Of a stretch of DNA of 64,000 bases, positions 45,062 through 53,137 are shown one piece after another. Under the pieces are notes generated by a model that did not search any database, was not told the DNA's origin, and saw nothing but the letters and a program-made list of their open reading frames with translations. Each line of letters starts with the position of its first letter. Within the stretch, counting starts at the first letter, position 1. A program made the position numbers and the translations under genes. Source of the stretch: Phallusia mammillata (taxonomy: Eukaryota); assembly GCA_965637545.1 (NCBI GenBank), contig OZ281497.1, forward strand, positions 19,530,001 to 19,594,000. Direction: 5' to 3'.

Positions 45062-45572
45062 CAGGGCTTCCCAAACTGGGGGTCGCGACTTGAGGGGTCG
45101 CAGAGAGCTGTACCAACTTTGCACAAAGTACTCCATACACTGGCGTGGAGTACGGGGGTGTGGGGGTTTTCCGCCCATTAAACTACTTAAAATTTTCCGT
45201 CCATTAAATTACTTAAAACCTAAATCGTTGTTAAAATTGCCGATTCGGCAAATCGTCTTTTACGTATGTGCGTATATTCTCGACGCACAGCAAACGTCCA
45301 AACCACACGAAGAAATTGTGACAAGTGCCCATTTGCAAAACAATGTGACAGAAACTAAAGGCTGAAGCACGTAAAAGGTATCGGTGTTTGGACGTGCAAG
45401 GTAGTAGACTCCCGAGTTCCCGTAGGTTGTTTTTAGTTTTCGCTCTAATTAGGCGTGTCAATATATACAACAAACGTATTTTTCGCACTGTTTATCATAT
45501 TATCTGTGAAGGGTCGTGAAAAATTTAAAGAGATTAAAAGGGGTCGCGATCAAAAAAGTTTGGGAAGCCCTG
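45062..45572. mobile_element. hAT-type MITE
   Basis: Perfect 16-bp TIR CAGGGCTTCCCAAACT / AGTTTGGGAAGCCCTG; subterminal GGGGTCGC repeats; TSD poorly matched. Confidence 0.88.
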
Positions 45573-47189
45573 ATATAGTAATGTTTTATGTTAAGTAGCG
45601 TTCATACCAGGTCAAGAAAAACCTGCTGTAGATTAATTAACTGTCTTTTTGGCTTTGTTACCATACAGAGAATTTATGTAATAAACTTATCTTGCAATTA
45701 TATTGTAAAAAACTTACAATCAATAGAAGCTCACACATCAACACTTATAAAACGTTGCGAACGACTAAAAGTCAACAACAACAACAACAACTGCTACACT
45801 ACACACAACATGATACGTCGCTTCCTTGCCTTGTTGGTTTACGACTGGTTCTAATTCGCTACAGCGATAAACACAGAAGGGTGTACATGACGTCATAAAA
45901 CGAAAAAAATGACGTAGCAATTTACACTATCACTAAAACATTAATAAACACGTCATAGGTGATACGAGTTTAACCATAGAGCAAACCAAAAGACGAGAAA
46001 TTCAAAGCAATAATAAATAATTTAATGTGTAGCGGGTTTTACGGTAAATATTACGTCCAAATAAAACGTTGTTTATCAGTACAATATTGTTTTGCTTTTT
46101 TAAACAATAGAATGATCAAAAAAGGTTTGAAAATTTTAAAAAACGTTATTTAAAACTTTAAAACAATGTATCTTCATTAAAAATTATTAAGGAGTTTTCG
46201 GGGCTTCAACAAACCGAAGTCAAATCTTACACAAGCTTGTAAAAAAGGCAACAACAACAAAGGAAAAAAGCCTATAGCACGCTTTGATGTACATGAATAA
46301 CTACGATATAGAGGTCAAGATGTAAAAAAAGCAAACCGACAAACAAGTAGGTAAAGTATTGGCTAAAGCCCGGCAAATTTGCGTGCAAAACTCATATAAA
46401 GAAAATACGTCCACAAAAACAGCATAAAATCGTAATTATTGAAGCACCAACGTGGTTTCGAAACCAACGTATGTTAAATGTTGTTAAGGTTTTGGCGTAA
46501 ATTGTAACGTAATAAACACTGCGTTTATGTATTTCAAGGCATTTGCCAAATTCTGACTCGAAGTAGACAATGAGTGTTCGAAAGGACGGGATAATTTGTT
46601 TATTTGTTCATTGTATTCAGCAAAATTACTGAAGTTGCGTCTGTCAGGGTTCACTTTTGGTATTTAACCCATTCGTAAAAGTTGATTTGTAATTGTGCTT
46701 TTATGAAAAATAAGCTTAATTTATCATCAAATACAGCTTGTTAGCTTAACGGGAATATTTAAGGTTTTCAAGGGTTCTCAGAAGTAAAGAAAAACAAATC
46801 TGGGACTTCAATAGTAAACCGGCTACTGCTGCAGACGATCGAAAGAACATTAGGTGCGTAAGCAAACAAATATAACAATTTTTTGCATTTTGTGAACCAA
46901 ATGTTTGATGTTTAAACTCGGTTTCTTACGTTTTTTTTTTACTTTAAGTTTAACTGATTAAAACGCCTGAAACAAAACCATGCTTCTAAATTGAGATTGG
47001 TGATATTTGACACACGTTTTAATGGGCAGTTTTTGAACACAGAAAACCTAAATAACCACTCCTGTTCTTTTGTATAGCACAAACGACACAGCTGGTTTGC
47101 AAGAGAATTTGGTCCTAATTTCTACATTTGTTTTTCTAACTTGAAATAAACATTATTTTTCTAATCATGAAACAAGTTTTGGGTTCTGC

Positions 47190-47251
47190 GAGTTGGTCTT
47201 AGTTCTAAATCAGGCCACTGCACCACGTCGAGGTGCCAACTCTCGCAGTGG
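47190..47251 (-). ncRNA. Candidate HDV-like self-cleaving ribozyme fold with non-canonical positions
   Basis: Minus strand: P1 CCACUGC, J GA, P2 GAGUUGG(C), P3 ACC, L3 UCGACGU, P3' GGU, P1' GCAGUGG, short P4 region, CUAAGA, P2' CCAACUC. Confidence 0.45.
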
Positions 47252-48094
47252 GTCTCTCGTTAGGTGACAGTGGAGAGACCCTCGTCTGGCGCAGAACCAG
47301 GCCGAGACGAGGAAGACAACACTGATCCATTTGCCAAAAAAATTCACTGCAAATGGACGCCTAGATCATACCTCTGCACTTACGTGTGAACGTAAATGTT
47401 GCCAATTATTCAAGTTTGTTTGCATTGATTGTTTGATTTTCCACAATACATGTAAGCTATAAATTCCATTACGATTTTCCTTTTTTTTGCAAGCTCTGCA
47501 CACAAAAGAAGGTCAATTTTAAGTATTTATTATTATACAGTCACCCTTCAATTTTCCAGAAATAAATCTCCACAAATTGTGCCACAACTAAAAAACAAAA
47601 ACATATGTTAGTTGTGAAATAAAAACAACCAATTCCGCTTTTTCAATCTTCTTCCAAAAATCTGCAAAACAAAAAACACAGTGTTAGTTTGTGACGTAAC
47701 AATATACAATGCTCAGCTCGCAAACTCGTTCCGAAATCAGCATTTCCGGTTCCTTGGTCTTATGCAGGCAGACTCTGTCGCTATGACCCTGTACTTGTGA
47801 ATGCTAGCTTCTGACGATGGCGGCCCGATTTGCCTGACTGACTTTACCACGAAGCAGCTCGCAGTATTCGGTAAAACTAAACTGGATCTGAGTTCGCAGC
47901 GCCGAGTTAAGAGAGAATATGAAAAGCAAACCCATCACATTCACATCAATATAGTTAAAGTTAAGTAACAAATTTAAAATTACTTTTACCATATAAGGAA
48001 GGAAGAGTTAACGCCTAAACCGCGACGTGTGTTTCAAAACAACCTAAACCTAGAAAGATTTTTACACAACAAATAAACATATTTAAAAAATTCA

Positions 48095-48230
48095 GGTTCT
48101 AATTTCCAGGTAGTGTATTAAACTACCTTTTTGTTTTGGTTCTAATTTCAAAGTAGTACATTAAACTACTTTTAGGTTCAAAATCCAAGTAGTATATTAA
48201 ACTACTTATTTCAAGCAGTATATTAAACTG
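48095..48230. repeat. Degenerate minisatellite, about 4 units of 25-45 bp
   Basis: Recurrent (ggttc...)agtagtayattaaactac. Confidence 0.75.
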
Positions 48231-48346
48231 CGTAAAGGTTCGAACTAGCTGGTTTCCTGTGGAAAATAGAGGTTGGTTAGTTTCTTTACTTTATTACAGC
48301 AAGTTGCACACTAAAATTTAGTCGTGGACAACTAAACTATCATTTT

Positions 48347-48930
48347 CCCAAAGTAACCACCAGTGGTTAGTTGTGGTCACCAAAAAAGATACTAAAGTAA
48401 CCACCAATGGTTAGTTGTGGTCAACAAAAAATCCCAAAGTAACCACCAATGGTTAGTTATGGTCACAGAAAAACCTAAAGTAACCACCAATGGTTAGATG
48501 TGGTCACCAAAATATCCAAAATAACCACCAATGGTTAGATGTGGTATCTAAAAAACCCAAAATAACCACCAATGGTTAGATGTGGTATCTAAAAAACCCA
48601 AAGTAACCACCAATGGTTAGACGTGGTCACAGAAAAACCCAAAGTAACCACCAATGGTTAGTTGAGGTGACTAAAAATCCTAAAATAACCACCAATGGTT
48701 AGTTGTGGTTACCAAAAATCCCAAAATAACCACCAATTGTTAGTTGTGATCACCAAAAGTCCCAAAATAACCACCAATGGTTAGTTGTGGTGAACAGAAA
48801 GTCCCAAAATAACCACCAATTGTTAGTTGTGGTCACCAAAAATCCCAAAATAACCACCAACGGTTAGATGTGGTCACCAAAAAAGACACCAAAGCGACCA
48901 CCAATGTTAAGTTGCGATCAATAAAAAATC
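48347..48930. repeat. 41-bp tandem repeat, about 14 copies, with a palindromic unit
   Basis: Consensus CCAAARTAACCACCAATGGTTAGWTGTGGTCACCAAAAATC; TAACCACC recurs every 41-44 bp from 48354. Confidence 0.97.
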
Positions 48931-49520
48931 CTTTGCCCTTTACGATTGGACCGGTTTAGAACACAGTTCAATCGTATTTAAGCTTAAGCCACTTGTGTTT
49001 TCTATAAATTATAAAACTGTTCTTCGTTCATCTGGTACACGAATGGTTGAACTTCTATCAAATCGTACATGATTAGTTGTTCATCTTCTTCAGTGCGATT
49101 TGCACCTCACGTTATTTAAGCCTTAACTCACAAACATTCCCACACAAACATACTTGTGGAACCGCCATCGTCCTGCGCGCCCCTATAATGCCGCCGCAAC
49201 TAGATCACAAACAAAAACAAGAAAAAACACAGCTTCTGAGCTCGCTATCTATCTGACTTCTCCGCAACATTTAGCCTATGAATAGTAAAATGTGAGGCTG
49301 CCGCGCCTGGCAGTGTAAACTTCACCAAAAGTAAAGTTATGAAACAAACAGAGCTTTTAAGTGGGTTTATAAGGCCGAGTCAACAAGGAATGCGAGATTT
49401 CGGTAATTATTATATTATAACATTACTATTAAACTATATTAACATTACTAGGGAATATTATAACATTACTATTAAAAAATAAAACGTATGCAGACTGCAT
49501 ATGAAATAAAAATGATTAAA

Positions 49521-49595
49521 ACCTGTGGAAAAATGCACCTGCAAAAAAGTACCTGTGGAAAAATGTACCTGCAAAAAAGTACCTGTGGAAAAAAT
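49521..49595. repeat. 30-bp tandem repeat, 2.5 copies
   Basis: ACCTGTGGAAAAATGYACCTGCAAAAAAGT at 49521, 49551 and (partial) 49581. Confidence 0.9.
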
Positions 49596-51659
49596 ACACG
49601 AGTTGCTAGAACCGCTGGGTGGCAGGCTTTGCCACAAGAACAAAGAACATTGTGTGCATCTGCATGACATCGCAACCCAGCCGCAGTCCAGGGTCTTCTT
49701 ATGGAAGAATAAACTGCGAGTGGATCGTTCAGCCAATACAGATGCACGGCACTGATGGAACAGTGCGACACCAAGCGACAGATCCCTACATTACAATGCG
49801 CTCAAGCTTATGGCAAAAAGGGAAGACACGGAAAAGCCACGTGTACAAACAACAACATCATCATCTTCAAAGACGGAATGAAAAAATCATCATCAAAGAC
49901 GGACCCTCCCGAATTCTGACATGTTTAGGGGGAATTGAAAACAGCCTTACGGTATTTTTAGCCGGCGTGCTCGCAAACCTTTCCTCTCCAGCCCAAAAAT
50001 GAGGGGAGACTGAGGCCGCCTGCACCGGTACCCATATCCGGTGGAATTTTGACTCCTGGGGATCAAACTCCGGTGGAATTTGACCACCAGCGGGCCTGGG
50101 TGGGTGACGGCGACGTGTTCTAGCCTTAGGTTTTAACGCTAACGTTTACCGCGCCGCGCCTAACTAAACCCATAACTAAGAGGGAATGCGGCGCGCGAAC
50201 CCATAAAAACCCTAGCCTAACTATTCTAACCTTAGTTATCGATGCTACAACTTCAACTTAATTGCGACTTAATTTGTAGCACCAAAAAAACAAAAATAAC
50301 TTGGGCCTCCAATCCGCTGGACCTGACAATGACGAATGGAGGTCCAGCGCAAGTTAGCATAGAGTTATTGGCCTGGGTGAAAATCTCGCATTCAATGTTG
50401 ACTATAACGCAGCAGTCTCCTATTAATAACTGACAGCTGTAATTTTGAAGTTGAATATAAGATGAAGGTTTGAAGACGATGAGTTGGGTCTGAAGAATCT
50501 GAAAAATAGAAAGTAGATTAAGACCAAAGGTTCGTTGTGTAAGCACAGATATCATCTGAGTAGGTTTGTTAAACATATGTAAACTACACTGTTATGTGAG
50601 TGTTTGTTTTTGTTATTAAATGAGCAGATAAAACAAACATAGACAATGTGGTACAATGGATACGAGGTTCGGACAATAGTGATCATAGTATGTGACAAGT
50701 AATTTATAATGGGCTGTTCAATGTTACACCGAAAAAAGGCAAATTGAAGCAATAAATTGGAGAAAGCCAAGTTTGAATTATAATACAGTGTTTTAACTTT
50801 GCAAGGTCGACGCACATAACTGAATTTCTTTCTCACCTTGAAGCTTGTATAGAAGTTTCGAGGTTAATCTTGTTCGAACGAACAGCAACAAAATCCTCTT
50901 CGCCTGCACAAAACATATCAGTTATTATCAGAAACGCCATTAGATAAATGTTTATGTTAAACGCTAAAATCTCAAAAACTGTCACATGTAATTCGCTGTT
51001 AGGTTCAGTTGCTTTGCCGTAAGCAGAACTACCGCTCTTAATTTCTAATACTGATAATATGCAGTTAAGAAAAAGCTTGTTTTTGAGTTTGTGAAGGAGA
51101 TACCCATTGATTACAGTAACACGAATCCAATCTCGTTTAAATCTTACTTTCAGCCTCAAGAATCGTCGTCATGGGAACAGAAAAGCCGCGCTACGTCATG
51201 TCACGTGTTCTGCTCTATCCATTTCATCACAGCGACCTGAAAAAGACAATAAGAGTTCAATAAATAAAGCATGACAAAATAAGAATTAAACGTTGGATTT
51301 CGAGATAACCAGTTTTAAAGTATGTCATTCCATTCGCTTTAATGCTTGCTTACAAATGCAAAAAGTGCTAACAATTGCAAAAGTTTATTACAGCATCTCA
51401 CAGTGTCGTTTGATAACCTGTTAAGTGACCGCTGAAGTGTTAATTGCACAAACCTGTTTTTATTGTCGCTGCATCACAGGAGGCTGGTTGAGGCGATGAA
51501 GGATTAAGTTAATGTTGTTCAGCTCCTGAAGCAGAGTTTCCGATGAGAACATAGCTCCATCTAGTGACAAAAATACTTATTGAACTGAAAGTTAGTTGCA
51601 GTGTGAATTCTGCACAGCCGAATTTATCAAAGTATGGTGGAATGTGACATAGTCTAGCT

Positions 51660-52365
51660 CAGTGATTTTCAACCGGTGTTCCGCGGAACACCGGTGTTCC
51701 GTGAAAGATCATCAGGTGTTCCGCGAGAAATTTGCTGGTTTCAATATAGGATTCTAATGTTTTAGACTTCTATGGTTTGACTAATGTTTCATGTCTAACA
51801 CCGGTCTAAAATCACTGGTTTAACACAGCTGGCGGAAATGGCTTTTATTTTATGAAAGTATTTATCCACCAACACCAGTTTGAGTGCTATGTAGTGATTG
51901 GCTTCATTTATTGTTGTGTAATAATAAGACCCGTTCTCTAATGATAACATAGCTAAATTGCGACTAAACTGCTGACGGTTAGTGCAATTTAGCTGGGTAA
52001 GCTTCAAGAATAATATACCCTTTAAACCCTGTCTCAGCCTAAACGAGTTTCAACCAGTTTTTTGACGCTCAGCAAAATTGTTTGCTCGAAAAACGATGAA
52101 TCAAGAAACAGCCAGTGCGGGGCGTGTATTGTATTTAAGTACAATACTAGTTTTATTTTCGTTTTCATAAAACCTCCCCTCAACTTCAATAGCTTTATAG
52201 GAGCATTTTCATCCGTTTCCGTGATTTGCGATTTAGCGGTTCCCGCGATTTAGCGTTTTAGTGTCAGAGCCTGGTTGTTTTATTGCATCAAATTTCGTTT
52301 GGTGTTCCGCAAAATTATTTTAATGCATAAAGTGTTCGTGGCTTAAAAAAGGTTGAAAAACACTG
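51660..52365. mobile_element. hAT-type MITE
   Basis: TIR CAGTGATTTTCAACC / GGTTGAAAAACACTG; 8-bp TSD GTCTAGCT / GCCTAGCT; GTGTTCCG subterminal motifs. Confidence 0.92.
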
Positions 52366-52715
52366 GCCTAGCTGTCCATTGTGCGCAAAATAAGTTAATA
52401 TCATCAGGTATTTTAAATAATCTAATCGGTGCGCAAAATCAATGTAACAAAAACCTCCAATTGTCTCTCCACCAATTGTGTCCTTAACTTTATAACGTCA
52501 TTACGTTGCGCAGCTATCCCCGGCTTGGTGAATGTTTTAGTGCAATTGTGTTACTGCGATTGTTTTTCCGAGCGAAATGAACTTAACTCAATCCCTATTT
52601 TTAATGTTTTGAATCTTTTTGGTTCAACGTAATAAGTTCCTTTGCATACACAGTCGGCTTATAAAGTAATCATGTGCTGGGAAAGGCGACAGTAAAAAGG
52701 ACAGGAGCTGCAAAG

Positions 52716-53137
52716 CAGAGTTGCAAGCGGGCCCGAAATCTGAGCCCGAACCCGGCCCGAACCCGGCCCGAACCCGGCCCGAACCCGAAAGTATGAGCCC
52801 GAAGCCCGGCCCGAACCCGAAACGTTTTTGCGAAGCCCGTTTAGGCCCGAAATTTTGATTGACAGGATGAGAAAGAAAAAAGAGATAGACAACAAATACA
52901 ATGATCAATAGTAGACCATGGGGTAAACAATACGTTTTAGAGTAGAGTGGGCATTAGGTCAAAGCCAGAGTTTCTTAGCCGAGTGATTTTATTTTGTTTT
53001 TTTAAATGGCGGACACGGAACGTAAAGTCAGGCCCGTTTTAAGCCCGTTTTCTCACAAATACCTAAGCCCGAACCCGGCCCGAACCCGGCCCGAACCCGA
53101 ACCCGGCCCGAAAAGCCCGGCCCGACTTGCAACTCTG
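52716..53137. mobile_element. hAT-type MITE with GCCCGAACCCG subterminal arrays
   Basis: TIR CAGAGTTGCAAG / CTTGCAACTCTG; perfect 8-bp TSD CTGCAAAG. Confidence 0.95.

Follow-up and report, generated by a model that had tools for sequence, protein, structure and literature searches.

A repeated minus-strand RNA module with a hepatitis delta virus-like double-pseudoknot core in the ascidian Phallusia mammillata

A structured RNA element lies on the minus strand of a 64,000-nt stretch of Phallusia mammillata DNA (contig OZ281497.1, positions 19,530,001 to 19,594,000), which is called the window here and whose own numbering is used throughout. [quoted passage not shown] Reading the minus strand from 47312 to 47182, we found every helix of that description in place and all of its coordinates correct. 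The element belongs to a multi-copy family, its helices carry compensatory changes in the homologues, and it stands at the 3′ end of a longer repeated non-coding unit. The parts of the module are the following.

47321-47324, minus: CAGU motif, on the 5′ boundary of the 3′ module; in the alignments its A-G-U is invariant in all copies and the preceding C is conserved.
47312-47306 paired with 47286-47280, minus: hairpin A, a 7-bp stem (CCUCGUC/GACGAGG) with inner pairs.
47298-47291, minus: loop of hairpin A, carrying GGUUCUGC.
47279-47273 paired with 47258-47252, minus: hairpin B (GUCUCUC...GAGAGAC), whose last base is the -1 nucleotide, C47252.
47252/47251, minus: predicted scissile bond, at the 5′ edge of P1.
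47251-47245, minus: P1 5′ strand, CCACUGC, forming 7 bp with 47221-47215.
47244-47243, minus: J1/2, GA, between the 5′ strands of P1 and P2.
47242-47236, minus: P2 5′ strand, GAGUUGG, forming 7 bp with 47196-47190; an unpaired C follows it.
47234-47232 paired with 47224-47222, minus: P3, ACC/GGU, 3 bp, enclosing L3.
47231-47225, minus: L3, the 7-nt loop UCGACGU.
47221-47215, minus: P1 3′ strand, GCAGUGG, partner of 47251-47245.
47214-47203, minus: C47214, the candidate partner of L3 G47229 in a one-pair P1.1, and 11 nt forming a rudimentary J1/4-P4.
47202-47197, minus: J4/2, CUAAGA, made of CUAA (47202-47199) and GA; C47202 is the candidate catalytic cytosine.
47196-47190, minus: P2 3′ strand, CCAACUC, pairing with the P2 5′ strand.
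47189-47182, minus: 3′ tail GCAGAACC, a complement of the hairpin A loop segment GGUUCUGC.

The homologues follow this structure closely. In an alignment of 15 sequences, 94.6% of cells pair in the structure made up of hairpins A and B, P1, P3, the P2 pseudoknot and the long-range helix, against 35-44% when the partners are slid by one to three columns, and its covariation score was reached by none of 500 shuffles. Eight pairs in total have changed on both sides. Hairpin A has three compensatory stem pairs, with 99% of cells pairing, and folds in every subfamily. Hairpin B has one compensatory pair and folds in all family-1 subfamilies with differing stem sequences. For P1 there are two compensatory pairs and further changes to G·U; its CCACUGC/GCAGUGG becomes CCACCGC/GCGGUGG or CCAUUGC/GCAAUGG. 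P2 likewise has two compensatory pairs, one position running from A-U through G-U to G-C, and 97-99% of cells pair in P1 and P2. The putative long-range pairing of loop and tail, which the first-pass annotation had read as a clamp across the cleavage site, shows no covariation, since in family 1 neither strand varies or varies more than slightly; several copies have an A·C mismatch as the outermost pair, and one has G·U. Covariation among homologues, which the first-pass annotation had proposed as a test, is thus present in both hairpins, P1 and P2, and the HDV-like nested double-pseudoknot core with its two 5′ hairpins holds up.

The covariation also bears on the topology and on the strand. 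In one copy G47236 has changed to A, with a matching change in P2′ and none in P1′, and because the compensation lies in P2′ the HDV topology is favoured over a simple extended P3 hairpin. P1 and P2 together contain nine G·U cells and no A·C cells, which indicates that the RNA under selection is the minus-strand one.

The core has the outline of an HDV-type ribozyme. P1, of 7 bp, begins at the predicted cut site and is interleaved with P2, also of 7 bp; a 3-bp P3 closes a 7-nt L3 with U first and G sixth; and J4/2 has C first, then N, then purines before P2′. Among 16 distinct sequences the invariant positions are the +1 C, U1, G3, C5 and G6 of L3, P3 (ACC/GGU), and C47214 after P1′. In C-N-A-A the C and the two As are likewise invariant, and the N varies freely (U, A, G or C). 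The L3 of the family reads U(C/U)GACGU. In the HDV and CPEB3 ribozymes the first U and sixth G of L3 form a metal-binding reverse wobble (U20·G25 in CPEB3), and the first cytosine of J4/2 is catalytic (C57 in CPEB3, C75 in HDV) (PMC4836649; PMC3774820). The positions held invariant in this family are those that matter in HDV-type ribozymes.

The first-pass annotation had listed four departures from the canonical ribozymes, two of which are less unusual than it had supposed. The first is the minimal P4. Only 8 nt separate P1′ from J4/2 in most subfamilies, or 12 nt in the group to which the window belongs, and they contain no conserved helix. Natural ribozymes can dispense with P4: active R2 ribozymes of silkmoths have none (PMC3774820), and the minimal HDV-like ribozymes, an established subclass, have a reduced one (PMC10879173). 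The second is the extra A before P2′, which is found in the RF02682 consensus, CUAAGA. The other two, the +1 C and the single, swapped candidate pair of P1.1, are real departures; their bases are invariant in the 16 sequences, and they are weighed below.

At the 5′ edge of the module, the CAGU motif is complementary to the invariant CUG core of the hairpin B loop (ACUG in most copies, GCUG in L032 and L033), with which it would form a putative pairing. Just upstream, at 47335-47365 on the minus strand, the copies of the window's group have the hairpin CCAUUUGC...GCAAAUGG, and the copies on C6 have a different one, GGGCAUACG...CGUAUGCCC, at the equivalent position in L021. These upstream hairpins may be a further structural element or a coincidence.

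Our HDV-like descriptor combined a P1 of 7 bp, a P2 of at least 6 bp, a P3 of 3 bp, an L3 of 7-8 nt with U first and G sixth, and a C-N-R-A no more than 2 nt from P2′. On both strands of the window it gave a single match, at 47251. The comparison with shuffled sequence that the first-pass annotation had proposed gave 3 matches in 100 dinucleotide shuffles, against the 1 in the window; this rate, 0.03 per shuffled window (128 kb), corresponds to about 100 chance matches in a genome of 240 Mb. The lone match is therefore suggestive only, and the weight of the case is carried by the comparative data. Beside the conservation in many copies and the excess of pairing over slid partners, it is one of three results that point beyond chance.

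The copies that the first-pass annotation had hoped to find by BLAST do exist, with 22 matches to the element in the source genome. A covariance model (R1) built from 15 copies gave at least 128 matches, at least 56 of them full-length and scoring above 134 bits; these counts are lower bounds, since scoring covered 150 of some 37,000 candidates. The eight interstitial copies nearest to that of the window are 96.8% identical over the 145-nt module, compared with 60-73% for the upstream 600 nt, and the downstream sequence is unrelated (33% identity). Either the module is therefore constrained much more strongly than the sequence around it, or it is homogenised separately. R1 also gave dozens of weaker matches with identical scores at many sites (about 125 nt at 57.5 bits, about 136 nt at 44 bits and about 78 nt at 36 bits; for example, G000:C1:24174223-24174347 and G000:C3:11518271-11518348). 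These are probably other repeat families with related ribozyme cores.

The module is one end of a larger unit, whose parts in the window are the following.

47172-50450, minus: the whole repeated non-coding unit, made up of the 5′ block U, a variable tandem-repeat middle and the 3′ ribozyme module.
50050-50450, minus: block U, a structured 5′ domain of about 400 nt.
48347-48928, no strand assigned: internal tandem repeat of 14 copies of 41 nt (Tandem Repeats Finder).

The unit is 2.3-3.7 kb long and colinear with the paralogous loci. Homology between copies extends upstream of the module and stops 10-60 nt after the tail. Block U and the ribozyme element are the only parts common to all subfamilies; the middle differs from one subfamily to another, with 21-nt repeats in L036 and L037. 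By nhmmer, block U lies 1.6-2.8 kb upstream of the element and on the same strand in all the subfamilies examined except L035. Besides the window, the block occurs in L030-L034 and L036-L038. RNAalifold predicted 55 pairs in block U, 11 of them with compensatory changes, and the block has no Rfam match. Its conservation begins near a TATA-like TTATAT and a GTCAGT motif. Block U also contains degenerate TTAGGG-like motifs in sense orientation. In one DNA run the depth over 47088-50436 is about nine times that of the flanks. Among the closest copies the similarity continues into the flanking sequence outside the unit, and from this they appear to be segmental duplications.

No long open reading frames (ORFs) surround the element and tblastx between subfamilies revealed no conserved coding exons, so protein coding was rejected; because of the compensatory pattern, we attribute the conservation to RNA structure. 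An autonomous retroelement was set aside as well, no reverse-transcriptase ORF being present in any locus examined; the same had been said of the neighbourhood of the element in the window, and inspection of its ORFs agrees. A tRNA-derived short interspersed nuclear element is unlikely, since ARAGORN found no tRNA or tRNA-like gene. In the C6 array (L021, L022 and L031; G000:C6:3.30-3.33 Mb) the module occurs in five copies within a 5.2-kb tandem array, in each unit of which an intelectin-like (fibrinogen-related) ORF and the module lie on opposite strands, tail to tail. A link with these genes was rejected: the gene is absent from the window and from the other loci, and is a passenger co-duplicated with the element.

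The core recurs outside this family. An R1 match of 37.6 bits at L035:8444-8579 (minus) belongs to a second repeat family, with the following core.

L035 core, helices: P1 CCACUAC/GUAGUGG, P2 GUCGG/CCGGC, P3 ACC/GGU.
L035 core, loop and joiner: L3 UUGACGUU, a C after P1′, and CCAA before P2′.

This copy has no GCAGAACC tail and a different leader. Its core lies about 165 nt after the stop of an ORF (L035:8744-10000, minus) with a weak match to the ubiquitin hydrolase (UCH) family PF00443 (E 7e-6), and is followed downstream by AAUAAA and then by a satellite array starting some 20 nt later. The repeat that carries it is present in at least 10 copies, 97-99% identical. The core is thus found a second time as a module, in surroundings unrelated to the first, and here too it stands 3′ of the conserved part.

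The distribution of the copies along the chromosomes is strongly skewed. On contigs of known length, 26 of the 49 strong matches lie less than 1 Mb from a contig end, compared with 6.6% expected by chance. Moreover, 26 of the 29 matches within 1 Mb of an end (a set that includes three near the left ends of two contigs of unknown length) are oriented with their 3′ end facing it; taken per chromosome end, this polarity holds for 10 of 11. The copies are not independent, so p-values overstate the pattern; the distal clustering and the end-directed polarity are nevertheless clear. C1 finishes on its right (G000:C1:36413079 to the contig end) in a true telomere, with (TTAGGG)n on the plus strand, so that the units follow the direction of the G-rich strand, towards the telomere. 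This polarity is opposite to the one that reverse-transcription priming at a chromosome end would give, and fits either an end-directed transcription unit or recombination between chromosome ends. The copy in the window is itself interstitial, at 19.58 Mb of the 31.3 Mb of C4, and no telomeric repeats stand beside the copies in the window or in the loci examined. An interstitial (TTAGGG)n array is found 8.9 Mb into C1 (G000:C1:8893168-8893257), and a telomeric 30-mer has 2814 forward and 3714 reverse matches genome-wide.

Taking together the observed fold, conservation, strand, unit architecture and distal, end-directed distribution, we favour with moderate confidence the reading that the element is one of 56 or more related P4-poor HDV-like ribozyme modules, each some 140 nt long and encoded here on the minus strand, that form the 3′ end of an upstream RNA. 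The 2.3-3.7 kb non-coding unit would be transcribed from near block U towards the module, where the core at 47251-47190 would fold into a nested double pseudoknot and the transcript would cut itself between C47252 and C47251. The upstream RNA would then be left ending in hairpins A and B with a 2′,3′-cyclic phosphate, and the ribozyme, together with any read-through or poly(A) region, would be detached by the cut. The outcome would be 3′-end formation of the upstream RNA and not the release of a retrotransposon 5′ end. The loop-tail complementarity, of 7-8 bp, would span the cut site and tie the leader to the 3′ tail, and this helix could pre-organise the fold or keep the ribozyme attached to its product. 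A peripheral “pinch” activates large HDV-like ribozymes (PMC4908430), and by analogy the loop-tail pairing might act in the same way. As a more speculative extension, which we think possible but doubtful, the units would be ribozyme-terminated long non-coding RNA (lncRNA) genes of a chordate, enriched distally and transcribed telomere-ward, with the ribozyme tethered by the leader-tail helix, in place of a retrotransposon-release device; such an lncRNA family would perhaps be a domesticated repeat.

Several points weigh against a self-cleaving module that forms an RNA 3′ end. The +1 nucleotide is an invariant C paired with G, compared with the G·U wobble or purine typical of HDV and CPEB3 at this position (PMC4836649). 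P1.1 has one possible pair, G47229-C47214, and although both bases are invariant they are swapped with respect to CPEB3 and HDV. In most copies the -1 nucleotide is paired inside hairpin B, which might hinder cleavage. The covariation in the 15 sequences derives from only about five independent subfamilies, and P3 and the long-range helix are invariant and hence uninformative in this respect. The first-pass annotation had looked to the HDV/CPEB3-type models of Rfam, which did not recognise the element: a gathering-threshold scan of the window and seven loci gave no match, and the best Rfam score of the 81-nt core was 10.3 bits, for RF02682 with a gathering score of 44, in a comparison with models that cannot represent pseudoknots and with families that share little sequence. 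The RF02682 alignment runs end to end over 47251-47190, in register with the core, and is compatible with the ribozyme reading without being evidence for it. With permissive settings, Rfam returned nothing above noise for 46900-47600 or 49900-50600. No contig over the element is present in three runs that are presumably RNA, which does not prove silence, since contigs do not reveal RNA ends either, and both runs that cover it look like DNA. Finally, a ribozyme at the 3′ end would be lost from the cleaved RNA, a loss easier to reconcile with a gene family that spread through DNA duplication than with a retroelement.

The main rival keeps the HDV-like fold and gives up the cleavage, the module being a structural or protein-binding 3′ end, for example the recognition tail for a reverse transcriptase, or a ribonucleoprotein assembly site, on a non-autonomous mobile or repeat RNA; we regard this as unlikely, yet a real contender. 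The conserved ends and variable middle of the non-coding unit are a layout typical of non-autonomous elements, and the best-studied active ribozymes differ from the module at three points: its C-G pair at +1, its lone and swapped P1.1 candidate, and its base-paired -1 nucleotide. In addition, binding to a pseudoknot inside its own HDV-like ribozyme has been reported for the R2 protein (PMC6765202). A non-cleaving module does not, however, readily account for the finding that exactly the catalytic positions (the J4/2 C, the two As, and the U and G of L3) are invariant while the N and the helices drift. Nor did the loci examined contain a partner element with the same tail and a reverse-transcriptase ORF, and the close copies resemble segmental duplicates with shared flanks.

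The first-pass annotation had noted that such ribozymes often mark the 5′ ends of retroelements, where an HDV-like ribozyme would release the element downstream of it. This is the role of most eukaryotic HDV-like ribozymes (PMC6765202), and the weaker R1 matches of other families could be read in its favour. Here the arrangement is the reverse: 2-3 kb of conserved sequence lie upstream, the sequence downstream is unrelated between copies once homology ends past the tail, and no reverse-transcriptase ORF follows the module in any locus examined. We consider a classic 5′-end ribozyme very improbable for this family, and the hint in the annotation does not apply here.

No more credible is a signal at the DNA level, either a single-stranded DNA structure terminating a DNA transposon (of the rolling-circle or another type), or a distal repeat spread by recombination without RNA function. 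The element does stand at the terminus of a repeat unit with internal tandem repeats, and distal clustering with fixed polarity is what recombination at chromosome ends is expected to produce. However, the strand-asymmetric G·U pairs, the covariation of the pseudoknot and the invariant HDV catalytic positions point to a selected RNA, and no Helitron-like termini or target-site duplications were evident by eye. Chance resemblance within a conserved but unrelated structured RNA, which the expected number of random descriptor matches and the failure of Rfam to recognise the element might suggest, is already disfavoured and the least credible of all, given that the family-wide covariation follows the HDV topology and that the core recurs in a second family with different helices.

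Compared with known systems, the predicted ribozyme module shares with CPEB3 and HDV the order P1-P2-P3-L3-P3′-P1′-(P4)-J4/2-P2′, the 7-bp P1, the 3-bp P3, the 7-nt L3 with U first and G sixth, and the C-N-A-A before P2′ (PMC4836649). It differs from them in the +1 C-G pair, the single, swapped candidate pair for P1.1 (G in L3, C after P1′) and the rudimentary P4, and in having extra conserved 5′ hairpins and a 3′ tail. The L3 of CPEB3, which we take to be UUCACGU, compares with U(C/U)GACGU in this module. The contexts differ as well, the CPEB3 ribozyme being intronic and that of HDV lying in a viral genome, whereas the module ends a repeat unit. RF02682, the HDV ribozyme of F. prausnitzii, is close in its loop (L3 UCUACGU, against UCGACGU here) and identical in J4/2 (CUAAGA), but it is bacterial and found upstream of glmM, and the module scores far below its gathering score.

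The theta ribozymes of bacteriophages are minimal HDV-like ribozymes proposed to process the 3′ trailers of tRNAs (PMC10879173). Like the module, they have a reduced P4 and lie directly 3′ of a structured RNA (PMC10879173); theirs is a tRNA, whereas the module is in a chordate and follows two hairpins that end a unit of about 3 kb. The module also has, unlike the theta ribozymes, a conserved complementarity between leader and tail. The ribozymes at retrotransposon 5′ ends (R2, L1Tc, RTE and Baggins) resemble it in being repeated eukaryotic HDV-like sequences, and those of silkmoth R2, like the module, have no P4 (PMC3774820). They are conserved downstream and variable upstream and adjoin reverse-transcriptase ORFs (PMC6765202), whereas the module has the reverse arrangement and no reverse transcriptase.

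Two further systems offer a functional analogy only. The catalysts differ, RNase P acting on MALAT1 and a hammerhead on Clec2, and neither has a sequence or structural relation to the module. MALAT1/mascRNA obtains its 3′ end through cleavage at a structured module and not through polyadenylation. The hammerhead of the Clec2 3′-untranslated region is a ribozyme located in a transcript's 3′ region (PMC6765202).

In eukaryotes, HDV-like ribozymes have been found chiefly at the 5′ ends of retrotransposons and in the CPEB3 intron. If the preferred reading of a 3′-end-forming ribozyme is correct, the 3′-end-forming role proposed for the theta type would extend to an animal, and the family would provide a natural variant of the core with a +1 C, a P1.1 reduced to one swapped pair and hardly any P4. 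Its conserved peripheral elements, which would bridge the cut site, bear on the regulation of such ribozymes, and the clustering near chromosome ends with an end-directed polarity connects a ribozyme family with chromosome-end biology. In the literature searched we found no paper that links an HDV-like ribozyme family to chromosome-end biology, and none on HDV-like ribozymes in ascidians or tunicates beyond R2, or in subtelomeres outside trypanosome L1Tc.

A scan of the sequence for bacterial promoters and terminators was uninformative. Finally, the window contains high-copy dispersed repeats that are unrelated to the unit, at 45191-45578, 51660-52365 and 52713-53137 (about 380, 700 and 425 bp, respectively). 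They are 83-95% identical to very many sites in the genome, with 1363 candidates for the query containing the 45191-45578 repeat and 3246 for the query containing the other two.

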